From assembly GCF_001194135.2 (NCBI RefSeq), contig NC_068984.1, positions 56,218,971 through 56,263,962 on the forward strand: DNA of 44,992 nt. Reading direction: 5' to 3'. Made by a program: the position numbers and the translations under genes. Shown one piece after another: positions 2,582 through 28,200 of this stretch (the first letter of the stretch is position 1; each line of letters starts with the position of its first letter). This DNA is from Octopus bimaculoides. Taxonomy: Eukaryota. Below the pieces are notes generated by a model, which worked only from the letters and a program-made list of their open reading frames with translations, had not been told where the DNA came from and ran no database searches.

Positions 2582-2708
2582 GTATTTGGATTAGATAACG
2601 ACTTATATTATCAATCCAACATCAATGACTCAACTACAATAACACGTCTAACAAAAGATGGAATATTAAATCAAATATTCAATGGAGTTCCTGACTGGTT
2701 GTATGAAG
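2582..2708 (+). CDS. DPP-family exon A (VFGLDNDLYY...IFNGVPDWLYE)
   Basis: Acceptor ttttcag| at 2581, donor |gtaag at 2709; 127 nt, ends in phase 1. Confidence 0.93.
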
Positions 2709-5700
2709 GTAAGCTAGAATGTTTTTTTATGGCTTTCCATAGTCCAGTTGGTCTGTATAAGTCTTCATAGAATTAAGCTGACAGGAGACACATATTTTAC
2801 CAGAAAACACTATGAAATCTTTTTAGCATGGATCTTGATTAATTCTCCACTGATAGTTCCTAATATTAGGTAGGCTGTGTCTGAAGATGAGAATGATCAC
2901 ATTAATATTATTTGAGTTGTCATGTCATATATTTTTATTAACTCATTTTATTTATATGCACACGCATACATAGATTTGATTTAATGGAACAACATTCAAC
3001 TGCTGCATGCAAGTAATATGTGTATGATCTGACATTACTGCACAAGGTCAATACCTTTTGTCGAACATGATACAAGTATGTTCAATAAGAAAAGTAGAAG
3101 ACAACATAGCTCCATGTGGTCTGTGGGGTGATTCTCTGATCTGAGGCTGAATTTGCCAGCTTTTATAATCATTATCAAAAGTTTTCTACAAACTTCAATC
3201 AAGCTATTTGGCAGGAAAACAGGCACATTTCCTTTGAAATTTACTGCATCAACCATAACAAGTCAGTCAATGCAGATTGATTGAGCCATATTCACTTGGG
3301 CATTAATACTTTTTATAACAATACATTGCTTTTTATGATAGTGTGGTAGGTCATGGTCCTGGCCTGGAAAAATCTGAGGGTGATGGTTCAACAGTAAGCA
3401 GGAGCCCCATTACTGAAGTCTTCTTACAATTTATTAAAACACAAACAAAAAGACTGTCAGTTAGAGCAACAAAAGCAGATATATTTTCATAAATTATAAG
3501 AGAAAAGAGTTTACAAGGTATACAGAATTCGAAATAGTTCACTATATCAGGTCATCCCATAAGTTTTGTCTGAATTGTGAATAAAGAAAACAAATGATCA
3601 AATGTTATATTTAATTGAAATTTAATCATCAATGTACTTTCCCTGATTATTTATGACTTCCTTCCATCTATTTACAAGCTTTTTAATCCCATCAATGTAA
3701 AACCCTTTTGGTTTCAAAGCGAAGAACTCCTGGCTTGCAAAAGTTATGTCCCCCAAATGATTCTGTAAACTACGAAACAAATGGTAGTCTGAAGGAGCAA
3801 GGTCAGGTGAATAAGGTGGATGAAGAATTTTTTCCCAACCAAGCTCTTCGATCTTCTGTGATTTGATCTTTGCAGTGTGGTGTCGTGCATTGTCCTGATG
3901 AAACATCACTCCTTTTCAATTCACTAAAGCGGGTCTTCTTTTCTTCAAAGCTTGGTTTAAATGCTCTAATTGCTGACAGTAGACTTGAGCATTGATTGTT
4001 GCATTAGGTGGTAACAATTCAAAATGAATTACTCCTTTGCAATCCCAGCAGATAGAGTGAACCTTTTTTCCATGAAGTTCCCTTCTCAGTTGTGGTTGAG
4101 CTTTTTCCCTTTTACCAAGCCACTGTTTACGACATTTAACATTTCAACAGAAGATCCATTTTTTTGTCACCAGTCACAAGTCTATCCAAAAAGGGTGAAA
4201 TGAGTTCGCGAGAATGGAGAGAAGAGCAGAAGTCAACTTGGGATTTGCGGTTGCTTTCAGACAATTCATGAGGCACCTATTTTCCAAGTTTAGGAACCTT
4301 TCCAAGTTGTTGAAGATGACGATGAACAGTTGTATGGTTTGAACTAAGCTTTATTGCCAATTCTTCAACTGATAATGCAGGATTATTTTCAAGTAATGCC
4401 TCAAGGAGCTTATCATCAAGCTCAATTGGACGTCATGTTCAATCTTCATCTTCAAGGCTGAAATCTCTACTTCTGAATTTTTCAAACCATCTTCTGCAAG
4501 TTCTTTCATTCAAGCATTCTTTCCCATAAACTGAGTGTATGTTTCAAGTCGCTTCGGCTGCAGAGTTTCCTTTTTTGTACTCATAAAGCATTATGTGCCT
4601 CAAATGCTCTTTGGATACTTCCATATTAGAAAGGGTTTTAATCAAAGAAATTTTAACTCTATTATTCTGTAAAATAATATTTAATTAGTTCAAATGTACA
4701 CAAATGCATAAAAATAATTTTTAATTCCATTAGACATTCTAAAATACTATTAAATTTCATTCCATTTTAAAAAAGGTAAAATCAGACAGAACTTATGGGA
4801 TGACCTGATATGTATATAGCACAGAAATGTGGTATCATAAATAAAATACATGTTCATACTTGGCAGGCCAATGAACCTTCCTGCCACTTTTAAGAGTAAT
4901 GTAGTAATGTCTTGTTTTAGGAACAACAGATTTATGTGCTGAAGGTGTCTGTGTATGTATAAGTAATTTTATCATTGTTTGTCAAGTGTATTTGCATCAA
5001 GTTAAGCTTTTTTTTAATTGTGTCAATATGGTGAAATGAATTGTAAAGAACAGAAAAGGACTGGGAATCTGTTTAGCAGGTTCCAAAGGCCATTCAAGAT
5101 CCATAGAAATATCATACCATATACACTCCATGGAAGCAGACAGAGAAACCAGATAAAATTTTAAAGATGATAGAGTTCTTCAGTTGTTGTAATTCATCCA
5201 ATTCTTAGTTATTAGCAAGTTTTTCCAAATCAATGGAATCACTGTGGTGCACAGAATTCACATAGAATACATATATATATATATATCAAATAATAAGCAA
5301 CACGGATTTCAAAAGTGATTGCAGTACACACGTTTCATGCTACTTCAATTTATTTAAGTAATGTGAGCATTACCTTAAATGCAATATGAAGAGCAATCTT
5401 CAGCTGCACGAAAAAATGTAGAAAAAAAGACATATTACAAATGTGGCAACATATTAAAACCAAGTGGGAGAGAGCAGAGGAAGAATATATAAGTCCATCT
5501 TGACATAGCAGGGTCTTGGACTTATATATTCTTCCTCTGCTCTCTCCCACTTGGTTTTAATATGTTGCCACATTTGTAATATGTCTTTTTTTCTACATTT
5601 TTTCGTGCAGCTGAAGATTGCTCTTCATATTGCATTTAAGGTAATGCTCACATTACTTAAATAAATTGAAGTAGCATGAAACGTGTGTACTGCAATCACT

Positions 5701-5801
5701 TTTGAAATCCGTGTTGCTTATTATTTGATTTTAATCACCCATCCTTTTGGGATGTGATATTCGGGTGCCTTCGCATAAGTACCATATTCAAGCCTTGAAT
5801 C

Positions 5802-5832
<31 letters not shown>

Positions 5833-7697
5833 GAAAATTTAGACAAATATGTATAACTAGGTTAGTGTGTTTAAATGCTGAATAAAGCACCAGCACAGTT
5901 TAGGCTATCTGTTGTTATCCGTAGTTGTGGTACACTTCCGTTGGATTTACTTCAGGAACTTCGCAGTGGCAGTATTAATCAATAGTAGGAGGGTCTCTTC
6001 AGGTACATTGATAAAGAAGTTTCACTAGAGATTTTTAGTGTCGGTTGGCTTCTTGTTATATGTCCATCAAGTTTGAAAATGAATAAAAGCAAAAAATTCA
6101 AATATGAAAGTGGAAAGCATACATTCCAGTTTAGATAAAATGATGTGATCAGCTTTCGCTGTAATAACTGCTTAGGGAATAAAGAAAGTAGAAGGTGAAA
6201 GGAAGATTAATAATTAGACAAGTACTTTCATGTTTGTGCATATGCACACTCACACACATGTACATACATACATCCACACATTTTTATTATATACTTGGTC
6301 TTATTATTGTTCTTTGTCTTAAATCTATCATCACACATCTTGTGACCGCTTCAGTAATTCTCCATCCCATGTCTCTTCCTATTCTGTTCAGTTCGTTCTG
6401 TCTTTCTGTGATGTCTATTCTTATTTGCACATACATTTGATTCTACGTGTGTGTGTGTGTATGTTTGTGTTTTGTATGCATGTATATGGGTTTGCTTACA
6501 AAACTGTTTGCACCCGTGTCTTATACTTATTCATTTTCTTTTATCACTCATTTATTTACTTATTTATTTTATTTTCCTCATTCCATCTTTAGTATATGCA
6601 TCTTGTGTGTCTATATAGATTTATCTATTACACTGTTTGTATGTGTGACATTTTTTCTTCTCCCATTGTCTTTAGTCATCAGGTTACGTAGTGTGATGAA
6701 GCGGAAGGATGTTCTTTTTCTATTCATGCTTCCTATAGAGGCTCGGCTTGCCTATTACTACATTTATGGCCTCTGAAATCTGTCATGTCTGTTCTATGTG
6801 TTGATAGTATCTTTACATTTATGTTATTAACCAAGCCTCTATGTTCAAACTGAGCATGTTGGTAGAGCACTGACAAGCTTTTCTCTTCTTTGAGTTCTTG
6901 CCAGTGTTCACCTCTGCTCACCTATATTACGTACTGTCTCCCCAATTATAGACTACATTCCTAATCTTACAGTTTACCTATGGGTTCATCCTACATACTA
7001 TATAGTTGTTATCTGTACATGGGGCCTTAAAAATGGACATGTTCTACAGATCAGGGATTTTAGGGGTGGGGGCTGGCCTTTCTACTACTTTAATTCGTAG
7101 ATTCCTCCTAAATAACATTTTCCTAAAAAGTTACACTAGTTTGCCACCAAGAGTAACATCAACAAACATGACTCTCTGTTATTTTTGGTTGTCATACCAA
7201 GAGTTGGCTTTATTTATCTTCTTGATCCTTTCTATGCTATTCCAGGATTTACTCCTGTATAGCAGGCAGATTCCAGATGCATCATTCTCTATGATGACTT
7301 TGTGCTTCGCCCTGGCACTTTCTACATTCTGATCCTGTCCCTTTATCTGTGACCAGAGAACTGCATGCGGTGAATGAAGTGTTGGATGTATCTTTCTAAT
7401 TCTGTTGGGTCACACATGCGGGACACATTTCTCATCACTCTTACCAAGTCCACTATGAGGAAACTGAATTTGATATTGTCTGCAATAGCTGCATTTTTGT
7501 AACCAGGTATTTAAAGGCCATCACCAGCAATATTGATACTGAAGGCTGCACCTTCTTCTTGGGCGTATATCTTGCTATTAAACTTGAACATGTGCAACTA
7601 TTTTTCTCAGTTTTCAGGGGTCTGACCCACCCATCTCATCTCTCTCTAGGGGTCTTCTTGACCATTTAGGTTACAGTAGGTGATCTCACTCTCTTTC

Positions 7698-7770
<73 letters not shown>

Positions 7771-10700
7771 TACACCCCTATGATTTGATTTACTATGTGG
7801 TTTGTAGCCTGGTCCACTAAAGGACCTTTTTTGTGAATACCACCAGATTAGATAAATTCATATATTGTGCATTAAATTTATATATATATATATGTGTGTG
7901 TGTGATCTCCTATTAGATCATCCTATCAGCGCTTTACTCGCATTTGATGCAGCAGCTGCAGGCTGGAAGAGGCCTCATATCAAGTCCCACACCAGATAGC
8001 TGGATGTGATTGGGGAAGATTTCCAGAGGCTTGATGTCACCTTGGAGGATGCAGAGGGGCTGGCACCAGACCACCAGCAATGGTGAGCACAGGTGAAACT
8101 GGTCGGCTCTATGCATGGTGAGGTCTTTGGGACCTCTAACCTGCGATGACCCCCACCCATCAAGCAAGAGCATGAAGTAAGAAAGTATTTGTGCAGAAGA
8201 TATAATGTTTAATAGTATTATGTAAAGAACTAGGTAAGCTGATATAACAGATAAATTTATAGTACTATAGAAATTAATATAGTGCAGTTTTTACATCACT
8301 TTATGTGATTGCATTAGATCAGTCAGTTCATGTGATGGAGGTACTGTGAAGTCTCTACGTTTCCCGCAACATAATTTCCGAATACTTCGTTTTAGACTGG
8401 TATCAGAAAGCCACAAAAACGGCACCACTAAAAATCTTGAAATGAATATTAAAAACGGTATGTAAATCTTTTGTTCAATTATTTCTTTATACATTACAAA
8501 ATACGTAAGGTTTTCAATAGAGTAGACGACTATGATGAATATAACAATAACTATCATAGTTATTACTGATGATTTCATTGTATCATTTTCTCTACTCTTC
8601 ACTGCAATGTTGATCAATAGACATGCAAATACCAGCATTGTAATAATATACAACGTAACTATAGCTAAATAGATATGGTAGGAAATGGTATCTAAGAATA
8701 TCTTGCATAAGCCACTTTCGTAATATGAGCCAGCTAGACTCATTAATAATACTTTGATCCAGATAAAAACCCACAAAACCACTGTTAATATGATCTGGAC
8801 ACGCAGAAAACTTTGACTTTCATATTTGCTTGGTTTAAAGTATTTTACAATAATATCGCAGCAAATAGGGAGTATCAAATATACAGCACCTTCCTCAGCC
8901 ACGGAACTTAGTATAAAAATCAGTAAGCAGCTAGACAGTGGCAAATCAGTGTATATATAAATATGTACGTTGCGGAAGTAAAAAAACAAAGCAAACAGTA
9001 TGTAGTTAAACACGTAAGTCAATAATACAAAAGAGCGTGTTTTCTCATAGACTCTACGATCGAGGAAAATGGCAATTGTTAACAACGCGTTGAGCACGAA
9101 TGCCACGATGACAGCAATACAAGCAGTTATACTTATCCAGTTAAACGCAGGGCCTGCATTAGTTGTAGAATTGTATTCTTGTTCGTTCTGTTCAAGATTT
9201 TCCATGTTGTATTAGCCACAATTGCTTCAAACTTGGTCGTTATTTTTAGATAGATTTCGGAATAATGTTATAAAGTTTTCACTTGTTGAATGTTCACGGC
9301 GTTTTTTGTTAAATGTTTCCGGTGTTCTTATATTAAATGTCCCCGGTGTTCATATATATGTATGTGTGTGTGTGTGTGTTTGTATAATGCGGTAAAAAAG
9401 AGACGATGAGCGATGGCTAGAGAAATATTGAGCTTTGTTTTTAATAACCAGTTGATCTAGTAAGCGGGGCCTCATATCAGTGAGGGGGAGGGGGCGCATT
9501 GATGCTGTCAAGAAGTAGGCCCCGAAACGGCATGCATTCTCTCCTGGTGACCCCATTTACTTGCTGGCTTCCGGTATGCAGAGTTCTCGACTGGTAGCAC
9601 TTGCATGTGCGAGTTGTTTGCAAGACATCACTCGATCACCTAAGGGTGTAAAAGTAATGTTACAATACAACCACAAATCTTGTTAAATACAGCATCTCTT
9701 GTTTAATCGTCATCTTCTCAAAAGACATCTGTCAAATGGTCTTGTTCTCAGATTGGAAAATGGTGAAATAAATTATTTCGACCAGGAAACTCTGTTTAGC
9801 TCTATTTGACAAGATTTGTGGTTTTTATTATAACAATATACTCTTATACATGTGTAGATAGATAGAAATCGTATGTGTATATATATATATTTTGCTACTA
9901 TGTTAAACTGGCCAAATGCGATATTTTTTTATCAATATTCATTTTGTTTGCAATAGCTGGTTCTTTTTATCAGACTATCATATTGTATGTTATTTCCCCT
10001 AAAAGGGGGACAGCACAAATAAACTTTGGGGTCGACAAATCAGATATAAAAATTTAAATGGGATATATGATTAATCGAATGATAGGAGTAGCTGTGTGGT
10101 AAGTAGCCTGCTTACCAACCACATGGTTCCAGGTTCAGTCCCACTGCGTGACACCTTGGGCAAGTGTCTTCTATTATAGCCTCAGACCGACCAAAGCCTT
10201 GTGAGTGGATTTGGTAGACGGAAACTGAAAGAAATCCGTCGTATGTATGTATATATATATGTTTGTGTTTGTCCCCCCTCCCCAACGTCTCTTGAGAACC
10301 GATGCTGGCGTGTTTACGTCCCCGTAACTTAGCGGTTCAGCAAAAGAGACCGATAAAATAAGTACTAGGCTTACAAAGAATAAGTCCTGGGGTCGATTTG
10401 CTTGACTAAAGGCTGCTCCAGCATGGCCACAGTCAAATGACTGAAACAAGTAAAAGAGTAAAAAAAAAGGTAAATCATATTGTAGCGAGGCACAAGAAGC
10501 CAGCACCATTTTGTATGAGATCTCGCCGGTAGCCATTACCATGTCCAAGACAGGAGCGAGATCTCACCTGCAACCATTTGCCATACGCGAGACAACAGCG
10601 AAATTCTCGTCGGCAATGACTATTTAAACAGGAGAATTAAGACATTCTTTCTCTTTCTTCCTTCTCACTTATAGAGTTCGTATCATGCTGGTGCGTTTAC

Positions 10701-13700
10701 TGATTGTGTGAGGAGTAGTCGACTGTCTTGCGCTGCTTTGCATCGGTTTTCTGGTTGTGCTTTCTCTCTGTCTTGAGGAATGTCAACGGTAAGAAACATG
10801 TTCTATTCGGACCTTAGTGGGTCCGAATTGTCCTCTTCGGAGGAGGAGCTCATACGAGCAATTGATAGGATGGACAAGTGCTTAAGGAAGAAAAGTTTAA
10901 CAGAAGTCACAAAAAAGGAGGTGGACATAACAAACAATAGAAAAATATGAGAAGATGGCATGTAGGGTAGGTGGTGACGTTAAGTTGTCACCACTCCAGA
11001 AAGTATTGGAAGAGATGGATAAGAAAACAGTAATATATAAGGTGTACTCAGTTGGAAGAAAGGAAAATTGAAAATGTTGAGGCAGAAATAATAGAAAAGG
11101 CATTGTGCTCCGTCTGGCAAGACATAACATATCTTGCCAGACGAAGCAGATACAGAACACTTGTGGTTCATTTCAAGTCAGAAGGAAAAGCAAAAGAACA
11201 CGCAGTAACCACAGTAAAGTTGGATAAAGTGGTCCTTCTACCCACTTATCTTGGAAGAAGGACTTCCAGAATTAGGGTGGAGGGAATCCCACCGGAAATA
11301 GATGTGACTTGGGTTGCGGCAGCTGTTCTTCTAGGAAGTAAAGAAGAAATAGCCGTCCTCCAAGCCACAAAAACAGAAAATTCAGTATGGAAAGGCCAAA
11401 CATTGGACCTGATCGTACAGGGCACTACAGAAACACTGGAAAATGTGGTGGAAATGGTAACCATTGGAGATGTAGTGTTGAGAGTGTGGGTGGCAGGCAG
11501 AACCCCTCGTTGCTTTAAATGTGGCCAAAAAGACCACATTAGAGTACACTGCCCTCTACAGAAGCTGAGCAGTCCAGAGGAAGTTAGAAAGAAGCAGAAG
11601 GTGCAACAGGAAGAAAAGAGAAACGAAGAACAGTGGATGATAGCTGAAGGAAGAAAAAGGAAGAGGAAGAAAGGACAGAGTGAAGTAGAACCCCAAATCA
11701 TACCCACCCCGCCCATATCCCCCCCAGACACCAAACCCACCCATTCCCCTCCTACACAAAGCAAGAGAAAAAAAGAAATACAAACACACAAGGATCAACA
11801 AACTCCCCATCCCACTGAAATTTCTAACTTCTGATATTTTGTACTTCTGGTCTATCTTTCTATCCATCTATTTTTCTATCTATCTGTTTGTCTGCCTGTC
11901 TATCTATCCATCTATCTCAATCTATCTATTTATCTATCTATCTCTATCTATCTCTCTAGAAGTCTGTCTATCCATCTATTTTTATCTATCTTTCTATCTA
12001 TCCACCTATCCATCTCTCTCTCTCTCTTTCTCTCTCTCTCATCACCTCCTCCTTCAACCTGTTCACTTGTTCCTTCTAGCTCAGCTTTACTTCTCTTAGC
12101 ATAGCACCCCCTCTTGAGTGATCACAACCAATTCTTGGTTGAAACCGTTTCAACTTCCTTTACATCATATTTATGTTTTACAAAAGGAAAGGCAGGTAAA
12201 CAAAATCATTTCCAGTAGTAATTGTCTCAGACCTGTATAAAAATGAAGTCTTCAATTAATGCATTTGATTCTAAGAACAGCTGTATAGTCTCCTTCCCAA
12301 TGCATCATACTTGATTAATTTCCCCTGGAGATTTCTCATGCTTCACAATTCTCTGATGTTTATGGTTTAAAGCTTTGCATCTTATTCTTGTTTCTACTGT
12401 TCTTGTATCTGCTGCCATTACTGCTGTTAGCTGAATTGATTTCTTCACTAACTTATAATCCAGGTCAATCAAATGTAACAAAGATATATATTGTTTTTAA
12501 ACAACTGACTTTTCTCTTTCTTTCTAAATTTATTCAAAACAACATTTCATGATTCATATAATAGTGATGATGATAGTGGTGGTGATGATTCATATAATAG
12601 TGATGATGATAGTGGTGGTGATGATTCATATAATAGTGATGATGATAGTGGTGGTGATGATTCATGTAATAGTGATGATGACGAGGGGTGACATCACAAG
12701 CACAGTCTACAGTTTGTGTGTGTGGTGTGGCATTGAATTAAAGATGAGAAAGAAAAGGAAAAGACAGTGAAATGAGACAAAAGTATGCATAGTATACAAA
12801 GTATGGGAACACATTAATGATGCAATCCTCTAGTTAAAAGAGAACCTCGAACTCAAGCTAATCAAGGAAACCCACAGGCCACCAAAGGCACAAGCCCTCA
12901 CCCAACTGTTGTTCTCCAATCTACAGGGGCATACTTGAAGTAGATCCATTCTCCCTAACCATTTTTACCACAGTCACCCACCTTTTTACAAATTCATTGG
13001 GAGCAAGTACTTCCCTATCCAACCTCATTTTCCTTTCCAAACGGAACTTAAAAAAGATGATATGAGCTTAACTGAGGAGGAAGGTGTCTTTCCTCTCTCC
13101 TTTCAGCCTCATCCACCACACAACCTGCTACTTGACGGAGCAACACTACCTACCCTGCTTTGTTAAAGATAAGTGGTGGGACAATCCTCATGATGAACTC
13201 AACCAATAACTGGATTCATTCTACAAGCAACAACAGCCGTTTGACATAATTCCACAAGTCAGTAATCCTCAGACATTACACAAATATCTGCAGCATGGTT
13301 TCATTGATCTGCACACATCTCAGACAGCCTCACCTGCCAGCACTTTCATGCCTGCAGTGTTTATGACACAGTAAAGGTGCATGGCTTAGTGGTTAGGATA
13401 TTTGACTCACAATCATAAGGTCACGAGTTTGATTTCCAGTGATGCATTGTGTCCTTAAGTAAGGCACTTTATTTCACTTTGCTCCAGTCCACTCAGCTAG
13501 CAAAGTTTATTAGTAGTACCTGTATTTCAGTGGGCTAGCCTTGTCACATTCAGTGTCATGTTGAATCTCCTTGATAACAAAGTTAAATATATGCATGTCT
13601 GTTGAGTGCTCAGACACTTCTGCATTAATTTCATGAGCAGGGTGTTCCATTATTCAAATCAACTGGATCCCTTACCATCGTAAACAATGGAGTGCCAATT

Positions 13701-14385
13701 TATGACATAAAACCAACAATTTTCAAGGGAAGGGGTCAGTCAATATCTCATCAACTCCAGCACTTGATTGATATTCTATTTTATTGACTCCTGGAGGGAT
13801 GAAAGGCAAAGTCACTCTCAACAGTATCTGAACTCAGAAGGTAAAGAGCTGGAAGAAATACCATTTTGTTTGATGCACTGATAACTCTACCAGCTTACTG
13901 CCTTTCTAAATTAGGTACAAGGCCTTTATATAAAAACTTTTTGTGTTCCAAACATCATCTTAATGATGAAAAACTTAGTTATTCAATTAAATTCCTCCAA
14001 ATTCTGAATCATTTTAAAAAACAATGAAAATAAACATACAATGCATTTATTTAATCAGAAATATTGTTATGAAAGGTTTAAAGGTTGTAGATGTCAGAAT
14101 TAATAAAACACTGGACAAAATACTAATACTAATAGTATTCAGTTTTGTCTCTTTAAGTTTGGAATTATTTAGGATTGGCAAATAATTCTAGTTAAACATT
14201 CAGGTCAATTTAGTTAACTGTTTTATTTTAAAATGTGTCTTTTTGCTAGTGATATAAATCAATATATTAATTTTATTGATGGCTAAGCCGATGAATGAAG
14301 GACGACAAGCGTGTTTATATTTCACTGAAGTAAAACATGTTGCTGTAAAAAGCATGGAAAATTATCCTTTTTATCCACTTCCATA

Positions 14386-14418
<33 letters not shown>

Positions 14419-17400
14419 NNNNNNNNNNNNNNNNNNNNNNNNNNNNNNNNNNNNNNNNNNNNNNNNNNNNNNNNNNNNNNNNNNNNNNNNNNNNNNNNNN
14501 NNNNNNNNNNNNNNNNNNNNNNNNNNNNNNNNNNNGATAGTTACTTGAGCCAGGATTCAACAGTCAGAGGTTCTTCCTGGCACCAATTCTTACCTGTTTC
14601 TCAAGTAAGAAACTTTCTGTCCCAAATATTTTCCTAAATGCAAAGTCACAATGTCATAAAGAAACATTAGTATTCAAGTGCATTTGCATACACACATTCA
14701 TATATAAAAGGTGTGTGTGTGTGTACAATGGGATTCTTGCAGTTTCTGTTTGCTAAATTCATTCGTAAAGGACAATAGTAAAAGACTCTTACAAAATGTG
14801 CTGCATGGTGGAAACAAGCCCAAAGCCAACTGGTTACAAAGTATATTTGTTTGCATTTCTTAAATAAATTTGTTAAGGAAGAATAAGAATATTCAGTCAA
14901 TATATCTTGAGAAAACATGTAATATTGATTTCTTACATCGTATGTACACAAGTTTATAGTTATACTCTATTATAATCAGATATTACAAATTTGTAACAGG
15001 TACTACTTGTACTGTTATTATTACTACTTCTGTTACCCCCACTATTAAATGTTTAAATGCTTGAGATAGTTGTTGTTAGCAGATGTACATGTGTATGCAT
15101 TTGAGGTCAAGTGGATTTGGTTGTCACAATTCTTAGTTAAGAGGAATTAAGGTTCCCAGTTTGAATCTAGTCTGGTATTGTTATATTATTATATTATACT
15201 ACACTCTTGGAGTGGTTGGCATTAGAAAGAGCATCCAGCTGTAGAAACCATGACAAATTAGATTGGAACCTGGTGCAGCTCCCCAGCTTACCAGGTTTCA
15301 GTCAAACCATCCAACCCATGCCAACATGGAAAACAGACGTTAAATGATGATGATGGTGATGATAAGGCACATGACTTGGTAGTTAAGGTGTTCAACTAAT
15401 GATTGTAAGGTCATGAGTTTGATCCCCAGCCATGCGTTGTGTCCTTGAGCAAGACACTTTATTTTTTCACGTTGCTCCAGTTCACCCAGTTGGCAAAAAT
15501 GAGTTGTATCAGTATTTCAAAAGGGCCAGCTTTAACACAGCGGGCATCACACTGAATCTTCTTATGAACCATGTTAAGAGTTCATGTGTCTATGGAGTGC
15601 TCAGCCACTTATATGTTAGTTTCATGAGCAGGCTGTTCTGTTGCTCGGATAAACTGGAACCATCATTGTCATAACCAACGGAGTGCCAGTTATATTACAT
15701 ATCACATTATATTATGAATCCAGTCTGGTAATCATCATCATCCTTTAACATTAATTTTCCATGCTAGCATGGGTTGACCAGTTTAACTGGAGCTGGCAAG
15801 CCAGAGAGCTGCACCAGATTCCAGTCTGATTTGGATTCTATGTCTGGATGCCTGATTCTATGAGTAGATGCCCTTCCTAATGCCAACCACTTTACAATGT
15901 GCTGGGTGCTTTTAATCTGGCACTGGCACAAATGTTTATATGTGGCACTGGTACAGGACTCTTGTAGGTCAATCCTCTTCACCAGAGGATGTGGCCGTAA
16001 CACTTCTACTGTGAAGGACGGGACTTCTTGAGTACAACAAGGTGTCTGGTATCTTGGTTCTTTGTCTTCTCATCCAAAAGATTCAGCTTTCTGAGGTTGT
16101 CTTTCAGTACTTCGTCCCATGTCTTCCTGGGTTTCTGTCGTCCAATAGTTCCAGCCATTTTGATTGAGCAGTACTTCTTTATGGAGTTGTCAGCATCCAT
16201 CCACATCACATGACCAAGCCAGCACAGTCTTCTCTCTTGCACACTGCATCTAATTCTTTTTATGCCTAACTTCTCTGGCATCATTATATTATTATATTAT
16301 ATATCCAAGAATAAGATTGTGATCATAAACCAAACAGTACAAAATTATTGAAACATAATGTAGATATCAATAAAAGTTGATTAAACATGTAAAATTTCAT
16401 CTAAAACACTTCAAAAATAACATCTTGAGCCAAATTTGAAAAAAATGTTTTCAAAAAATCAAACAGTATTTTCTGAACAACCTAATAGTTTTATAACCAT
16501 ACTTTAATAAAGTGTACACAGTCGTTAAGTGTTTCATGAGTACTGTCTTTAGTATCTTTGTTTTCACAGATTTCTTGTGTCTTTCACTTGAGTATAATGT
16601 TACCCAACAATTTAGACTATTTCTTTTTTGCTTTCTTTTTGTTTTGTTTTGTTTTTTTACATTAGATTTCTTGCATTATATGTGAGTAAATACAATATTT
16701 TATTGTTTGCTCCCTCTGTCACTCTTTCTGTTTTTTCTCTAATCCTAATTTTCTGCCTCTCTATTTACCAGAGGAAATCCTCTACAGCAACAAAGCCATA
16801 TGGTTTTCGAAGACTGGCAAATGCCTTGCTTATGCTACTTTCGATGACAGGGGTGTTCGAATGTTTGAATATCCATATTATGGCTACATGAATGATGAAT
16901 ATCCAAAAATCAACCGTATTCCATATCCTAAAGTAAGTAAACTATTTCCTACTCCTTCTTGATGCTGTTGTTATTCACAGTTCTTCTTTGAAATAATGTA
17001 AACGTCTGATACAACTAGCTTATATCAATAAATTTTGCCCCACTGTATTACAGGATCTTCTACATTGCTATTTGATCTCCTAGAAACAGCGACTAAGTCA
17101 CATTCACATTACACAATACTATCTTAAAGGTGGTGAGCTGGCAGAAATGTTAGCACGCTGGGCGAAGTGCATAGCGGTATTTCGTCTGCCGTTACGTCCT
17201 GAGTTCAAATTCTGCCGAGGTCGACTTTGCCTTTCATCCTTTCGAGGTCGATTAAATAAATACCAGTTACGCACTGGGGTCGATATAATCGACTTAATCC
17301 GTTTGTCTGTCCTTGTTTGTCCCCTCTGTGTTTAGCCCCTTGTGGGTAGTAAAGAAATAACACAATACTATCTTAAAAGGAGAAGGACACACTGATGTGA

Positions 17401-20400
17401 TCCTGGATGCATGCTACTTGAGAAAGGTGAAGTGGTGGTTATGATTAGAAAACCTTTGATCTGGTGATGGCAATGGGTTTTAGGAATTAGAGCTATGCTA
17501 AACTTTTTGAAGCTGAGGTTGAGGAGGAGTGGGAGTTGACACAACAATCCTCCCAACCTTGAGCTAAAAAGTAGGTGAACACCACACCCTTGCTTTACAT
17601 TTCTGTAACCACTTTAATCAAAGGTTTGCACAATCAGGACAGAACTGGATTTAAACAACATCAACAACAATTTAGTGACAAGAATTTAGTGAACTTAGCC
17701 AATTGAATATTAAGTGCCTTAGTCACAGATGCTATACTGTGAAAATGATAAGAACAGAAGAGTGCAAATTAAATGGCTAATTGGGGTTCTATATATATTT
17801 GTGTGTGTTTGTCCCCCCCCCCCCACCATCACTTGACAACTGATGTTGGTGGGCTTATGTCCCCGTAACTTAGCAGTTCAGCAAAAGGAACTGATAAAAG
17901 AAGAACTAGATAAGTCCTGGAGTCGATTTCTTTGACTAAACCCTTTAAAGCAGTGCTCCAGCATGGCTGCAGTCAAATGACTGAAACAAGTAAAAGAATA
18001 AAAGAATAATAGTTCTCTATATTTTTGCCTAAATCTTAAACTTTAAAACATAATTTTCTTTTAAGCTTTCCACATAACGTGTGACTGATTTCTTTTATTT
18101 AATTTTCTGTGTTAGTAATTTTTCTTTTTACATTTACTTTCCAATGTGCTAGTAACATTTTATTTGATCTCCAGTGGACAAAAGATTTCTTCTTTTTCTT
18201 TCTTTTCTTTTTTTTTTTTGTTATCTCCAGTGAACTATAAAGTCAGAAAAGGCTGACAACATGATTTAGTTAATCGAAATATACTATTGAATATAATATT
18301 GAATATACCCCATCTAACAGTACAAGTTTTCTAGCTGTCACTGTGCTCTAAAAATACATTCGACAAATCTAAACAAGTCTTTTTAATCCTTAATTTCTTC
18401 ATGGGCCGAAAAGGTGAGACTGCCATGATCAGCATTTGGTCCTAGTTCAGACTTTCTCTCAGAAGCCACATGCTTGACTTTGCCTATAGCAGACTACAGC
18501 TTATAGTGGTGTATATAGTCTCTATAAAGAATGACGTTGTTGTTGTTGTTGGCACTCCATCGCTTGCGACGTCGAGGGTTCCAGTTGATCCGATCAACGG
18601 AACAGCCTGCTCGTGAAATTAACATGCAAGTGGCTGAGCACTCCACAGACATGTGTACCCTTAACGTAGTTCTCGGGGATATTCAGCGTGACACAGTGTG
18701 ACAAGGCTGACCCTTTGAATTACAGGCACAACAGAAACAGGAAGTAAGAGTGAGAGAAAGTTGTGGTGGAAGAGTACAGCAGGGTTCGCCACCATCCCCT
18801 GCCGGAGCCTCGTAGAGCTTTAGGTGTTTTTGCTCAATAAACACTCACAACGCCTAGTCTGGGAATCGAAACCGCGATCCTATGACCGCGAGTCCGCTGC
18901 CCTAACCACTGAGCCATTGCGCCTCCACAAAGAATGACTTCAAGAAATCAGTAAATCCATTACCCAAAATATGCAGCTTAGTGCATCAATGATCATTTAA
19001 TTGACCTAGCTGCCAGAAAAGCATTATATATGCTAATTGGATTTATTGATTGATTGAAGTTCATATTTATGGAAGTAACTATATAAATAACTATGAGCAA
19101 TATTTCCCAATAGACAGGCAAAAGTGAGTGTATAGCCTATGAAGAGAGTCTAAATTTGAGCTAAAACTGATCAGGCTAATCTTCATTTGTCTACAGATAT
19201 GATTCAAAGAAGAAAAAGAGACTTTCCTTTTACTTGTTTCAATCATTGGACTGCGACCATGCTTGGACACCATCTTGAAGAGTTTTAGTCAAACGAATCA
19301 ACCCCTAATTTTTTAAAAGTTTGGTACTTATTCAATCAGATCTTTATTGCTGAACTACTAAGTTACAGGGACATAAACAAACCAACACCAGTTGCCAAGT
19401 GGTGATGGGCAACAAACACAAAGACACATACACATAGATATATACATATATATGAAGGGCTTCTTTCAGTTCCATTCACCAAATCCACTCACAAGGCTTT
19501 GGACAGCCCAGGGCTAAAATGGAAGACATTTGCTCAAGGTATTACACAGTGGGACCCAGAGCCATGTGGTTACATTTTCTATTTTTCTTTTTCTTTTTTT
19601 TTTTTGTACATTTCTTCTCTGTATTTCATTACACAACAGAGCCATGGTTAAAAATTTGTGCTGTTTGACAGTTGGTACTACAAAGTATATTAGTAACTAA
19701 TTAAAGGTTTAGTGACTTGCTGTATAATGCAGGAAGCAGTTTGCCTGCTACCAACATGTCATTGAGGTTGAGTATGGCCTGAGTTAGCCAGAAGAACTTA
19801 TTGTCACTTAACTTGCCAGAAACAACAGTGAAACTCCTTCATATCACACTCTACCATCTTACAAAACAAAAGATGTATAGTTTGGATATCATAAAAGATG
19901 GGATGATCAAAACTAGTATGCTCTTAATCATAGACTTGCTTGATCAAAGCTGACCAAAGATTAAACAATGAAATTTGGATATAGCCTTGTTAACAAACTC
20001 AAGGTTGACTTTTAAAGAAATCTGGTTGATTGCTCTCGTGAAAATGTATTCTACTCTAAACTTCTAAGTAAAACACCCTACTTGTATATCACAACCCACT
20101 TTCACTTGACCTACTACAAATAGTTGAAAAATCTCCCAACAATAGCAACACTGTCAACGAGCCTGTAAATGTTTGTTCAGTTGTTGGGATTGTTCATTTT
20201 CATCAGCTTGAAATGAGCAGTTCTATAATCCAAGACATCCCAGCCATGACCATACCCTCTTTTATTCAGTTGTAATTTATCTAAGTGGAGGTGCAATGGC
20301 CCAGTGGTTAGGGCAGCGGACTCGCGGTCATAGGATCGCAGTTTCGATTCCCAGACCGAGTGTTGTGAGTGTTTATTGAGCGAAAACACCTAAAGCTCCA

Positions 20401-21363: not shown

Positions 21364-23500
21364 CTTTCTCATGTGTGTTTCTCTTCAACCTCCTCAGTAA
21401 TCGAAATCTAGTAATCAATTCTAATTGTTTCGATGTGTCACATTAACTCTCAAGAAAGGCTGAGTGCAAAATAAATTGAAAATGTTGATGATTCAAAGGT
21501 ATCGACCAGTGTAGACAATTCAGTTGTGCTGGTATGGATTTAATAAAAGTTGAATGAAAATATTCTGTTGAGCTGGGTGGAAGCTATTTATAGTAAGAAA
21601 CCCCACAGACAACTTGAACCAGAATGAATGCATTTAAAACCATGTTTAAATTATGATGGAATAAATGGAACCTTTACATATTTTCAGGAATAGAGCAGTG
21701 GATTGACAAAATCATTAGAGAATCAAAATAAATGCTGTGCAATATTTCTTCTGGCTGTTTACATTCTAAGTTCAGATTTCACCAAGATCAATTTTGCCTT
21801 TCATTCTTTCAGAGACAATGAAATAATGTACAACTTAAGTACAAGGATCGATATGACTGACTAACCCAGTCCCATCCAAATTTCATATTTTAAAGATTAT
21901 AAATCAAGATTATAAATCAAGATTATAAATCAAGATCATAAATAATTATTGTGTGTGTATGATTAATCGCTGACCAAACACCTTTCAATTTTTTTTCTCC
22001 GTGTTTTTCTCCTTGTTTTCTCCGTATTCTTTCTGTTGAAGAGCGTAGCTCGAAACGTTAAAGACTTTCTGTATTCCCGAGCGTCAAACTAATACATCCT
22101 TTTGTTGTTTACACCACCTGTCCTCGTCTGTTGTTGTTTTTTTTCATACATTCTCCCATATACATATATGTATATGTGTGTGTATATATTTAGAAGGTTG
22201 TTTATTATGGTCAGTTAGGGAGTGACTGTTGGTTACAGACCGATAAAGCACTTAGCTGTAAAAGCAACTAATCAGACTCAAACAAACAACCTTGCTCTAA
22301 TGTTTTAGCAGCGTTTTGTCCATCTTTACATTTTAAGTTCAAATGCCACAAAAGCTGACTTTGCCTTTCATCCTTGCAAGGTCGATGAAATAAATACCAG
22401 TCAAACACTGGGGTTGATGTAACTGACTTATCCCCTCCCCAGAAACTGCTGGCTTTGTGCCTAAATTTGAAATTGTTATTGTTATTATTATTATTATTAT
22501 TATTNNNNNNNNNNNNNNNNNNNNNNNNNNNNNNNNNNNNNNNNNNNNNNNNNNNNNNNNNNNNNNNNNNNNNNNNNNNNNNNNNNNNNNNNNNNNNNNN
22601 NNNNNNNNNNNNNNNNNNNNNNNNNNNNNNNNNNNNNNNNNNNNNNNNNNNNNNNNNNNNNNNNNNNNNNNNNNNNNNNNNNNNNNNNNNNNNNNNNNNN
22701 NNNNNNNNNNNNNNNNNNNNNNNNNNNNNNNNNNNNNNNNNNNNNNNNNNNNNNNNNNNNNNNNNNNNNNNNNNNNNNNNNNNNNNNNNNNNNNNNNNNN
22801 NNNNNNNNNNNNNNNNNNNNNNNNNNNNNNNNNNNNNNNNNNNNNNNNNNNNNNNNNNNNNNNNNNNNNNNNNNNNNNNNNNNNNNNNNNNNNNNNNNNN
22901 NNNNNNNNNNNNNNNNNNNNNNNNNNNNNNNNNNNNNNNNNNNNNNNNNNNNNNNNNNNNNNNNNNNNNNNNNNNNNNNNNNNNNNNNNNNNNNNNNNNN
23001 NNNNNNNNNNNNNNNNNNNNNNNNNNNNNNNNNNNNNNNNNNNNNNNNNNNNNNNNNNNNNNNNNNNNNNNNNNNNNNNNNNNNNNNNNNNNNNNNNNNN
23101 NNNNNNNNNNNNNNNNNNNNNNNNNNNNNNNNNNNNNNNNNNNNNNNNNNNNNNNNNNNNNNNNNNNNNNNNNNNNNNNNNNNNNNNNNNNNNNNNNNNN
23201 NNNNNNNNNNNNNNNNNNNNNNNNNNNNNNNNNNNNNNNNNNNNNNNNNNNNNNNNNNNNNNNNNNNNNNNNNNNNNNNNNNNNNNNNNNNNNNNNNNNN
23301 NNNNNNNNNNNNNNNNNNNNNNNNNNNNNNNNNNNNNNNNNNNNNNNNNNNNNNNNNNNNNNNNNNNNNNNNNNNNNNNNNNNNNNNNNNNNNNNNNNNN
23401 NNNNNNNNNNNNNNNNNNNNNNNNNNNNNNNNNNNNNNNNNNNNNNNNNNNNNNNNNNNNNNNNNNNNNNNNNNNNNNNNNNNNNNNNNNNNNNNNNNNC

Positions 23501-23576
<76 letters not shown>

Positions 23577-24956
23577 TATGCAAACTGGCAGAGTCATTAT
23601 TATCTTGGACAAAATACTTAGTTGCACTTCTCCCTGCTCTTTACATACTAAATTCAAATTCCACAGAGACTGACTTTGCCATTGCCTTTTGAAGTCAATA
23701 AAATAAATACCAGTTGAGCTCTATGTTTGATATAATCAAGTTGTCTGCCTCCCTTAGAAATTGTTGGCCTAGTGTCAAAATTTGAAACTATTATTATTAT
23801 TGATTTTGTTCTCTTCTTCTGGTCAGTCACCTCAGAAATCAGGATGGCACACCAATGCACCATTTTGATTTCTGTGCACTGAAGAAGTAAAAGATTAAAG
23901 ATTAAGCAGTACAAATTAATACACACTTGACACTTAGCATTTGGAGTGGCAAAAACTTGCTTACTAGTGTTTGCAACTAAACTAGAGGCTTGATTATTTT
24001 CTAATAATTTGATTTGAATCGACCCCAATACATAACTAGAACTTACTTTATTAAAAACTGAGAGAAAAAAAGATAGTCAATCACCAGTGAGATTTGAACT
24101 CTGAATATATTAGTAACTGTGGAGGCGCAATAGCCCAGTGGTTAGGGAAGCGGACTCGCGGTTTCGATTCCCAGACTGGGCGTTGTGAGTATTTATTGAG
24201 CGAAAACACCTAAGGCTCCACGAGGCTCTCCGGCACGGGATGGTGGCGAACCCTGCTGTACTCTTTCACCACAACTTTCTCTCACTCTTAGTTCCTGTTT
24301 CTGTTGTGCCTGTAATTCAAAGGGTCAGCCTTGTCACACTCTGTCACGCTGAATATCCCTGAGAACTACGTTAAGGGTACACGTGTCTGTGGAGTGCTGA
24401 GCCACTTGCACGTTAATTTCACGAGCAGGCTATTCCGTTGATCGGATCAACTGGAATCCTCGATGTCATAAGCGACGGAGTGCCAACATATTAGTAACTG
24501 TAGTCAATGAGGGAAAAGAGGAGTAGTAATAGCAACTTTGATTTTTTTTACATTAATCACAAACCTTTTGGAAAGGAATATAATCCTTCAAACCAACTCC
24601 TGTTACTTAATCATTGTATATCTTAACAAATGTGAATGACAGAATTTGAGCCCGGAACTTGAAGAGCAAAAGTAAATACTGCAAAACATTTAATCTAGTT
24701 TCTGGTGGATTCTACAGCTATTATATAGATAAAAAGGAGGCAAAAATTTATATATTTATATTTGTTTTATTGAAAGTTTTTAATTGAAATATATTTATAA
24801 ATAATTAATTTGTGAATATTTTCTTTTTAGCCTGGGACACCAAATCCCATTGTGACATTGAAGGTTGTCAACCTTCAAAGTGTGTTACAATTACAGTTGA
24901 ACTTTACACCTGAAGTCAAGAAATATTTAACGTAAGCCAATTATTATTATAAACTT

Positions 24957-25250: not shown

Positions 25251-28200
25251 AATATATGTATATCAATATATATCTATATCTAAATATGTATATAGATATA
25301 TATAAATATAATATATGTATAAATTTTAATAGTGTAGAAACAGCTGTAATTTACAAGATGTGTCATTTGTTTGTATAAAAAAATAAAATTGAACTGAATT
25401 TATCACTTAATAATTAAATAATTTAATTGTTCAATTTATTATTTTCGTTTCTATTTCTAATTTATATTTATATATTGATAAATTGTATGTTTATTTTATT
25501 TATTTATTTACCTATTTGTTATGAGTGAAATATATATATATATATATCATCATCGTCATAGTCATCATTATTTAACGTCCACTTTCCATGCTGGCATGGG
25601 TTGGACAGTTCGACTGAGGGCTGGCTAGCCAAAAGGCTGCACCAGGCTCCAATCACATCTGGTAAGGTTTCTACAGCTGGATGCCCTTCCTAATGCCAAC
25701 CACTCCGAGAGTATAGTGGGTGCTTTTTACGTGCCACCAGCACAAGGGCCAATGAGGTGGTACTGGCATAGGCCATGCTTGAACGGTGCTTTTGACATGC
25801 CACCAACACAGGATCCAATCAGGCGGCACTGGCAACGATCACACTTGAATGGTGCTTTTTAAATGCCACTAGCACGGGAGCTAGTCAGGCGGCACTGGCA
25901 TCGACCACTTTTCTGTAATAATCATAAGCCTCTCCATCCCTTTTCTGCAACCAGTCTTCAAAGGCCCTTTTCTTCTCTACTACCACATCCTTTACCTGCT
26001 CATTCTGCCACTCACTACCTTTCTTCACACCCATTCTAACCACCCATGTACCAAATAGGCACCTCAGAGGCACATCTCATTACTGCCTCTCTAAAGGCCT
26101 CCCATTCCTCCTCCACATCTCCCACCTCCCGTTTCTTAACCTCTTATTCACCCCTCAATTTCTCTACATGCTCCTGCTCCCTCCTATCCATTTCACTTAA
26201 CTTCACAAACTCTCTCCTCCCTGTCATTCGTCTAGCATTCAATTTCGAGCATACCTTCAATTTACCCTGTATGAGGAAGTGATCTGACACTCCTCCACCT
26301 TCACCTCTCATTACATGCACATTCACAAACCTTCCAACCACTCTCTCTCTCTCTTTTACTCTTTTACTTGTTTCAGTCATTTTGACTGCAGCCATGCTGG
26401 AGCACCGCCTTTAGTCGAGCAAATCGACCCCAGGACTTATTCTTTGGAAGCCTAGTACTTATTCTATCAGTCTCTTTTGCCGAACCGCTAACATACGGGG
26501 ACGTAAACACACCACCATCGGTTGTCAAGCGATGTTGGAGGGACATATATATATATATACATATATACGATGGTCTTCTTTCATTTTCCGTCTACCAAAT
26601 CCACTCACAAGGCTTTGGTCGGCCTGAGGCTATAGTAGAAGACACTTGCCCAAGGTGCCACGCAGTGGGACTGAACCCGGAACCATGTGGTTGGTAAGCA
26701 AGCTACTTACCACACAGCCACTCCTGCGCCTGAATGATTAGTGAATAATCCATCAAGTCCCTCTCCACTACTGTTCCTCCCTCCACCCTCTGCCATGTAA
26801 ACTTGTTTTTCTCCCACTTTTTAAAAAGATTATTCTCCACCATCAACTCCTGCTCCATACACATTTCCAACAACCTCCCTCCACTCTCATTCTGGCCAGG
26901 AACTCCATATTTGCCTACTACATTTTCTACTTCCTCATTTTCCACTTGCACATTCAAATCACCCAGCACCACCACATAGCCACTTTTCCCCACCCTATCC
27001 ACACACTCTGTCAATTTCCTCCAGAACTCCTCAACTTCTTCCTCACTCCTTTCAGTCCCTGGACCATTGGACAATATGCACTAAAAAACACCCACATCTT
27101 TCCTCCCTACTTCATCTTAACCCACATTAACCTTGAAGACACTTCCCTTCACTCCACCACACTCTCCTGCACATGCTTACTCACCAGCAAGGCCACTTCT
27201 TCATGAGCCCTCCCACTCCAGACACTCAACCAGTCACATCACCAAACTTGTACCTATCCTTACCTTTCATCTTAGTTTCACTCAGTGCATCCATCCTTCT
27301 CATCATCACACTCCCTATCTCTCTCCTCTTTACCTCACTTGTACTGCACCCATGCACATTCCATGACCTTAGTACTAGGGTGGGATTTAGTGCTAACCTT
27401 CTCCCACTTCCTTGTCTTTTTCTTGTTGTCTTTTTAGGAAACAGAGTTATTAAGAAGAGTGGATTCCCAGTACCTTCGCTCCCACCCCTTTTAGTTGCTT
27501 CTTATGCCATGCAGGGAATACAGCAACTGCATTCCACCGCCCCTCCCCCTAGTCACAGTGGGGTTTGCTAGTTAACCCATAGCTGGAACTCTTACAGGTG
27601 CAACCACTCTGAGCCACACTAGACCTGGGCACAATATTTTCTTCATGTTTTCCCCATTAAATTACCAAATTCCTCCTTTTTGCAACACCAATTTGCTTGG
27701 GCAATTCAGTTATTTGTCTATATATTCTGTCTTATATACATCAAATTTAGACAGACGAAGTATTAAGAGTCTTCACTTTTTTTACTCTTTTTTTTTTTGT
27801 ATAAAAGTTTTTGTACGAAGTTCTCAGCTTATCAGTTTATACATAACAACACAAGCTGTGCTGTTTTATTTATGTAAATATTAATGATTTTAATGATGAT
27901 GATTTTAAATAAGAGGATTCATTAATCATCTGTTCTGTCTTTCATAGAGATTACTACTTAACTCATGTCGAGTGGATGTCCGATGACTATGTCGCAGTGT
28001 CCTGGGCAACCAGGGCTCAAAACCACAGTATTGTCACACTGTGCAGCTCAAGGGTTGGCATGTGCCACTTTGTAAGTAACTTTGCTTTACACCTATTCAA
28101 TATATGATAATATGATAAGAATCAGAATTATAAGATCATTTTTAACAGGTGTATTTCATTGATAAAATAACCAGTCTTGTGCCAATTTCCCTGCAATAAG

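Follow-up and report, generated by a model that had tools for sequence, protein, structure and literature searches.

A 44,992-nucleotide stretch of the Octopus bimaculoides genome (NC_068984.1, positions 56,218,971 to 56,263,962; hereafter the window) carries an open reading frame (ORF) at 8291..9205 on the minus strand, nested antisense in an intron of a DPP4-family gene. Our reading is that this ORF is the coding exon of a working receptor gene, one of a small family of rhodopsin-like seven-transmembrane (7TM) receptors that is restricted to octopods, fast-evolving and highly divergent, and we put the probability of this reading at about 0.7. The family is already catalogued in databases and is uncharacterised; the window gene is an apparently unannotated addition to it that has been maintained by selection. 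A literature search for the family's LOC identifiers and SRR accessions found no paper that mentions these loci.

The ORF runs uninterrupted from an ATG through 304 codons to a TAA stop and is the longest N-free ORF of the 45-kb window. Its length is far beyond chance, since the longest ORF in 60 second-order Markov simulations of the window averaged 145 codons with a maximum of 213, and the stop-trinucleotide frequency predicts only ~1e-3 open stretches of 304 codons. A preliminary description of this DNA, made from the letters alone, had reported the ORF, and its coordinates proved exact. The gene appears to have been missed by the source annotation. Other listed "ORFs" of 385-411 aa lie at runs of N and are artefacts of translating N. 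These runs (1,427 N in total, at ~22500-23500 and ~42480-42650) are assembly gaps flanked by long homopolymer or microsatellite tracts.

Searches of billions of sequences yielded a family of ~17 sequences, with relatives of ~295-315 aa that came from Octopus wherever an organism name was given. The preliminary description had suggested a lineage-specific receptor, and indeed only octopod sequences were found among the family matches. A 15-billion-sequence collection supplied 8 annotated or assembled relatives, and a filter-free hidden Markov model (HMM) search of 1.84 billion representative proteins returned seven sequences only. The named relatives are LOC106869328 and LOC128246974 of O. bimaculoides and LOC115220942 and LOC118766695 of O. 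sinensis. Another, P0001, is an 81%-identical protein assembled from SRR118693xx reads. In the tree, the window copy and P0001 form a pair with 100% bootstrap support inside an "X1-X4" subclade (82%), nearest to P0006 of O. sinensis (80%). Synonymous divergence (dS) of the window copy is lowest to P0002/P0003 (0.39-0.43), whereas the protein tree and the 3' untranslated region (3'UTR) favour P0006.

Other members of the family are found in tandem arrays. On O. sinensis CM016875.1, five genes lie head-to-tail in ~74 kb (in the order 315-aa gene, P0004, P0006, P0003, P0007), and O. bimaculoides CM046617.1 has at least five family genes within ~90 kb. One copy in the latter array (L001:15914-16829, 6 kb downstream of P0002) is open from codon ~45 only. 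Its N-terminal part matches in another frame or position, and its orthologue P0015, from the SRR11869394 species, is intact; it looks like an N-terminally disrupted copy, or an assembly error. A counterpart of P0006 was absent from the covered O. bimaculoides interval. The family shows the pattern of a lineage expansion, being taxon-restricted and tandemly arrayed with birth-and-death evolution, while the window copy stands by itself, the surrounding -8/+35 kb containing no paralogue. A faint tblastn match at 3429-3518 (-), considered as a decayed second paralogue, was rejected as chance; a six-frame search with the family HMM gave no second match better than E=0.22.

At one end of the O. bimaculoides array, 5.7 kb downstream of P0008, there is a Cys-loop receptor gene on the opposite strand (L009:16629-20918, CM046617.1 ~205-209 kb), whose 563-aa product has Neur_chan_LBD and Neur_chan_memb domains. 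The octopus chemotactile receptors belong to the Cys-loop receptor superfamily.

Hydropathy and both of our AlphaFold models gave the predicted protein seven transmembrane (TM) segments, and both models also have a beta-hairpin in extracellular loop 2 (ECL2) and a short helix 8 (H8). Model 1, built from a 9-sequence alignment, was of low confidence, with a predicted local distance difference test (pLDDT) score of 53. Model 2, built from 14 sequences, reached a pLDDT of 80 (88-96 in the TM core) and a predicted TM-score (pTM) of 0.76. The helices span residues 23-48, 50-84, 90-123, 131-158, 173-203, 208-245 and 249-265, with H8 at 269-280. Lysine and arginine together number 19 in the predicted cytoplasmic segments versus 3 in the extracellular ones, which argues for an N-out/C-in topology. 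The extracellular N-terminus is very short at 22 aa and contains an N12-S-T sequon; the loops are short too, with only ~5 residues in intracellular loop 3 (ICL3). C93 and C167, the TM3/ECL2 pair predicted to form a disulfide, are invariant in 17/17 family sequences, and C279-C280 follow helix 8. All of the features given in the preliminary description (7 TM segments, TM3-ECL2 Cys pair, N-glycosylation sequon, helix 8 with Cys-Cys) were present.

At or close to the extreme C-terminus, almost all family members also carry an acidic motif that hardly varies, (P)SHELT(T)E(L/I)N, in which E293 is invariant. A role in trafficking or partner binding is possible. A short extension produced by loss of the ancestral stop codon, described below, comes after the motif in the window copy.

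Structure and, more tentatively, sequence profiles place the protein near the G-protein-coupled receptors (GPCRs) of class A. Foldseek with model 2 gave 542 matches in PDB at E<=1e-3, and the best 50 of the 542 were all class A GPCRs, with TM-scores of 0.57-0.74. The top matches were to chemokine, opioid, apelin, adrenergic, lysophosphatidic acid (LPA), neurokinin, orexin, adenosine and muscarinic receptors, with no favoured subfamily, and the low-confidence model 1 gave the same class A picture. This structural search had been suggested in the preliminary description, and it answered in favour of a GPCR. A search of PDB with the family profile found three sequences only, S1PR2 (two entries) and 5-HT5A, aligned in register at E=0.05-0.33. 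With hhalign, we compared the family to an alignment of bovine rhodopsin, the human A2A adenosine receptor and the human beta2-adrenergic receptor, the identity of these references being verified by 1e-139 to 1e-162 matches to PDB entries. The comparison gave 83.5% probability and E=8e-6 over 209 columns, TM3 to H8 only, and paired C93-C110, D117-E134, P125-P142, W145-W161, C167-C187, P262-P303 and the KLCCGK of the family with the LCCGK of rhodopsin. UniProt's automatic label on two family members is "GPCR family 1 profile domain-containing".

As judged from model and sequence, the protein has a class A fold with probable distant class A homology. The class A landmarks Cys3.25 with its ECL2 partner, Asp3.49, Trp4.50, Pro7.50 and a helix 8 with cysteines are present. 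The likeness to class A GPCRs (Pfam 7tm_1 / PROSITE PS50262) extends to the N-out/C-in 7TM topology, the ECL2 beta-hairpin, the Pro found 8 residues on from the acidic 3.49, the Cys-Cys that ends helix 8 as in rhodopsin, and TM-scores of 0.6-0.74 to many solved receptors.

Comparison with P0001 shows that the gene is under moderate purifying selection. The contigs used (Logan SRR11869384, SRR11869391 and SRR11869394) are collinear with the non-coding flanks of the window and end in microsatellites, and we treated them as genomic; collinearity of the SRR118693xx contigs with the window extends over 9382 to 7879. The coding sequence (CDS) is 89.3% identical, the 5' flank 78% and the 3' flank 83%. 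There are 97 substitutions and a single 9-bp in-frame indel in the CDS, and the compared flanks of 177 and 412 bp contain 26 and 16 gap positions, respectively. By the Nei-Gojobori method, nonsynonymous divergence (dN) is 0.092 and dS is 0.211, the latter equal to the flank divergence, so that dN/dS (omega) is 0.43. The synonymous excess is significant (binomial p=4e-4). These results agree with the earlier suggestion of a maintained receptor. Among the paralogues, omega is 0.82 for P0002/P0003 (O. bimaculoides/O. sinensis), 0.47 for P0004/P0005 and 0.26 for the 315-aa pair; selection across the family is generally weak or diversifying.

The preliminary description had called the gene intronless and possibly retroposed. 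"Intronless" holds for the CDS only. When we aligned the upstream regions of 8 family genes, a polypyrimidine tract and CAG, forming a canonical splice acceptor, lay ~29 nt upstream of the ATG in every array member, and a conserved UTR block (GTTTGAAGCAATTCTGGCCAA) came after them. In NCBI, several distinct coding exons are grouped together as "isoforms" of a single locus, which fits one or more shared upstream non-coding exons. From this sequence evidence, the genes of the family each have a single coding exon and a 5'UTR intron and cannot be called intronless. The coding exon of the window copy begins with a short 5'UTR segment at 9206..9232 (-), which reads GTTTGAAGCAATTGTGGCTAATACAAC and is conserved across paralogues. 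It is preceded by the decayed 3' end of the family 5'UTR intron at 9233..9265 (-), in which the stretch "ttatt(cc)gaaatctat" (9265-9250), corresponding by homology to the final 20-35 nt of the intron in paralogues, is kept. A-rich sequence, of which 0.40 is pyrimidine versus 0.65-0.80 in paralogues, now stands in place of the polypyrimidine tract and CAG, and an AG is left at 9233-9232. DNA homology of the window copy to the O. sinensis copy ends at 9235. P0001 (L002) shows the same acceptor decay as the window copy, which dates the change to before the two species separated.

The 3' end has also changed. In P0006, P0002 and P0003, a TAA or TAG is followed by TCACATAAAG.ATGTAA, and the same stretch is read as codons in the window copy and P0001. 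The 3'-end alignment places the stop loss at 8309..8311 (-), where the ancestral TAA has become CAA (Gln299), adding the six residues QSHKVM from former 3'UTR. The probable 3'UTR now spans 8194..8290 (-). It contains ATTAAA as a poly(A) signal at 8213->8208, 78 nt past the stop. This signal had been noted earlier as possible, and it is real and conserved: the window, P0001 (L002) and the 3'UTR of O. sinensis P0006 share an identical block, ATAATACTATTAAAC. Similarity of the window copy to P0006 stops ~10-15 nt downstream of ATAATACTATTAAAC.

The single uninterrupted CDS, the isolation of the copy from the array and the extent of paralogue homology, which begins essentially where the exon does and ends slightly beyond the poly(A) signal, could be taken to mean a processed retrogene made from the mRNA of an array member. 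However, the intron-derived "ttatt(cc)gaaatctat" stands immediately upstream of the exon and no A-rich tract follows the poly(A) site in the window, and a single-exon CDS, being the ancestral state of all members, is uninformative on retroposition. Searching the array loci for a first exon homologous to window 9235-9345 gave only 10-16-nt chance matches, and no exon-1-like sequence was found. The flanks of the ORF matched nothing else in the window except microsatellites, and no flanking direct repeat or target-site duplication was noticed there, although no systematic search for one was made. We regard the retrogene as highly improbable and already largely refuted. The retained intron sequence and the lack of a poly(A) tract argue instead that the window copy arose by DNA-level duplication or rearrangement.

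Several observations weigh against a functional class A-like receptor. The hhalign probability of 83.5% is below 95%, and TM1-TM2 are uncovered. No Pfam 7tm family matched the window protein or any of 14 family members at E<=10, so the HMM search for 7tm families that the preliminary description had suggested went the other way from the structural one. The Pfam scan of the window protein and its relatives gave noise-level matches to domains of unknown function only, and a single-sequence search of PDB with the receptor protein gave no match. Arg3.50 is absent from 17/17 sequences, with I/F/Y/V/L at position 3.50, while D/E is kept at 3.49. TM7 reads VVPFLWL, in which Pro7.50 is kept without Asn7.49 or Tyr7.53 (NPxxY has become (V/L)PFL(W/L)), and TM6 (TMKSSVITMIVIVIFIIVVYSIENLTYFVMYK) has no Trp or Pro and so no CWxP. 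Unlike class A receptors in general, the family thus falls below Pfam 7tm_1 detection, lacks Arg3.50, NPxxY and CWxP, has Asn at the likely 2.50 position and has an ICL3 of ~5 residues. On the sequence as predicted, several membership features of the usual sequence definition of class A fail, so the earlier claim of a GPCR stands for the fold, as seen by Foldseek, hhalign and the profile search of PDB, and not for the motifs. As no family member has Arg3.50, NPxxY or CWxP, coupling to G proteins is uncertain; we infer it only, and canonical activation is doubtful. Further, the 15-billion-sequence collection has no 100% match to the protein, and the searched data include no gene call for it. 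For a GPCR, 0.43 is a high dN/dS, and one paralogue pair goes up to 0.82. The splice acceptor of the window copy is degenerate and no promoter was identified. Finally, the argument for a chemosensory role, taken up below, is drawn from evolutionary pattern only.

The missing Pfam match and the loss of three class A activation microswitches might be explained by a 7TM protein of another kind (a channel, a transporter-like protein or a member of another superfamily) that AlphaFold forced into a GPCR-like bundle. Against this, comparisons made without any model choose class A as well, aligning the Cys pair, 3.49, Trp4.50, Pro7.50 and the helix-8 Cys in register. The top-50 structural matches are class A GPCRs without exception, and the model has both the ECL2 hairpin and helix 8. 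We consider this explanation very unlikely.

A different concern is that the move out of the array cut the copy off from the 5' exon and promoter there, leaving a silent relic, unexpressed, whose ORF is intact only for lack of time. The polypyrimidine tract and CAG acceptor present in every paralogue are degenerate in this single, isolated copy, its dN/dS is fairly high, and genes have died elsewhere in the family, as in the N-terminally disrupted L001 copy of O. bimaculoides. Yet the acceptor decay predates the species split, and the 97 CDS substitutions that came later show the synonymous excess. There has been one in-frame indel in the CDS versus 26 + 16 gap positions in the flanks, and the 5'UTR block and poly(A) signal are conserved. 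Purifying selection measured since the split argues that the gene kept working after the acceptor was lost, presumably from a local start site, and we judge a silent relic to be improbable.

The history of a functional octopod receptor gene would then be as follows. The window copy would have left the array by a DNA-level move and landed antisense in the DPP4-family intron. It would then have lost the family 5'UTR splice acceptor and the ancestral stop codon, both changes being common to the related species, and it is presumably transcribed from a local promoter or start site. A small ligand or a short peptide would bind to the protein in the outer, variable half of its bundle, and the protein would signal via a conserved intracellular partner, a heterotrimeric G protein or other.

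The distribution of variation along the protein is the basis for the last of these steps. Column entropy across the family is 2.03 in the outer (extracellular) half and 1.33 in the inner (cytoplasmic) half (p=1.5e-15; p=8e-9 for TM helices only). Replacements between the window copy and P0001 follow suit, with 38/145 in the outer half versus 17/136 in the inner half (p=0.004). Across the family, sequence is conserved in ICL1, TM2, TM3, ICL2 and helix 8 and varies in the N-terminus, ECL2, TM5-TM6 and ECL3. Conservation is strongest in the blocks FLDRxxYxKTR (ICL1), TM2, PICCDFIVKYFKPSKYE (TM3-ICL2) and VPFLWLxDxTIRQSIRKLC (TM7-H8). Such a pattern would be the signature of one conserved intracellular partner combined with diversifying ligand specificity.

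Tandem arrays, gene loss, dN/dS values of 0.4-0.8 and variability on the ligand side point to an environment-facing role. A chemosensory role appears the most likely one on this pattern, although we would hold it only tentatively, at somewhat worse than even odds. That the family amounts to an unrecognised octopus sensory receptor repertoire with non-canonical signalling, complementing the Cys-loop chemotactile receptors, is a more speculative and rather unlikely extension. If it were true, such a repertoire would partly explain the apparent poverty of cephalopods in class A chemoreceptor expansions.

In Lophotrochozoa, tandem, orthologue-poor, lineage-specific class A expansions have been described as putative chemoreceptors, with few in cephalopods (Nath et al. 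2025, PMC11886862). By its sequence features, the octopod family fits this kind of expansion. The resemblance lies in taxon restriction, tandem arrangement, fast evolution, few one-to-one orthologues, pseudogenes and ligand-side variability. It differs in that the TM3-ECL2 Cys pair is invariant in the octopod family, whereas the corresponding disulfide was absent from the cephalopod and molluscan structures analysed in that study (Nath et al. 2025, PMC11886862). Octopus or cephalopod GPCR expansions have also been reported in four groups, covering neuropeptide-receptor-like class A, adhesion and Methuselah-like receptors (Ritschard et al. 2019, PMC6408891). Duplications in the octopus lineage, tandem co-localisation and some positive selection are common to those expansions and to this family, but the octopod family has no recognisable Pfam domain or assignable ligand class.

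If the gene is expressed, it adds a further case of HMM-based censuses of cephalopod GPCRs missing very divergent families, since Pfam sees 0/14 of the members tested, and the family would add candidates to the short list of octopus chemosensory and orphan receptors. Given its conserved cytoplasmic surface, it is also a natural test of how a class A scaffold signals without the canonical microswitches. For genome annotation, the window supplies a concrete unannotated gene nested in a host intron.

The host gene was identified from its beta-propeller exons, the catalytic-domain exons being outside the window. Exon A (2582..2708, +), in the DPP4-family beta-propeller region, and exon B (16772..16932, +) both have AG/GT boundaries and, when spliced, match Pfam DPPIV_N positions 62-150 at E=3.6e-31, continuously across the junction. 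Exon C (24831..24931, +), also with AG/GT boundaries, continues the tblastn match from exon B, and the three exons spliced together match PF00930 (DPPIV_N) positions 58-172 at E=1.7e-40. Against PDB, the host peptide matched DPP4/FAP at ~1e-23, then DPP10/DPP6 at 1e-20 to 1e-18. The intron between exons A and B (2709..16771, +) is 14,063 bp long, and the receptor CDS with its recognisable UTRs (8194-9232) lies wholly within it on the opposite strand. The antisense nesting in a 14-kb intron of a DPP4-family gene, as first described, is therefore sound. It could be demonstrated for the window only, since the contigs of the close relative cover just 1.5 kb around the gene.

The preliminary description had also raised a functional link between the two genes. 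DPP4 processes peptide hormones, and the nested pair could in principle be co-regulated, with the host peptidase trimming a peptide ligand of the receptor; the point in favour from the locus itself is the physical nesting only. However, the fetched array loci (O. sinensis, ~74 kb; O. bimaculoides, ~57 kb) had no homologue of host exon A, B or C, and none was found in any O. bimaculoides, O. sinensis, ENA or Logan locus covered. A search for an octopus host orthologue with the spliced exon peptide gave three distant fragments only. One array end is flanked instead by the Cys-loop receptor gene, the receptor N-terminus (22 aa) and loops are short, and the host was assigned by propeller exons with the catalytic exon outside the window. 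Because the array loci lack homologues of exons A-C, nesting is, on the loci covered, no visible property of the receptor family. We give a functional coupling hardly any credence, and the nesting is most likely incidental.

Single-coding-exon GPCR genes nested in introns are familiar from vertebrates, where GPR21 lies in RABGAP1 and GPR52 in RABGAP1L, and both arrangements are widely conserved. The octopus gene resembles them in having an uninterrupted receptor CDS within the intron of an unrelated host gene. It differs in that the DPP4-family nesting is shown in the window only, in contrast to the wide conservation of the vertebrate cases.

The ORF had been described as lying amid decayed transposons. 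There are remnants of these in the window, but the flanks of the ORF, 1.5-2 kb to each side, consist of unique sequence and not of transposons. GC skew is -0.36 to -0.47 over 2 kb at 26000-28000, coinciding with an ORF at 26703-27074 (-) that has no Pfam match. A 260-aa ORF at 11052-11834 (+), within the same host intron as the receptor, is probably a gag-like retroelement remnant, with a Lys/Pro-rich tail and a weak zf-CCHC match (E=0.0075, below threshold). The Pfam scan further found a weak zf-RVT match, a reverse-transcriptase-associated zinc finger, at 31507-31953 and a Tc1/mariner-type transposase fragment at 41876-42286 (+; DDE_3, E=4e-10). Short interspersed repeats occur in several copies in the window, at 10084-10466, 17790-18006, 19227-19571 and 26354-26725, and also at 30325-30914. 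Copies of these repeats with 84-91% identity also occur in the O. sinensis and O. bimaculoides loci and explain all non-coding window matches there.

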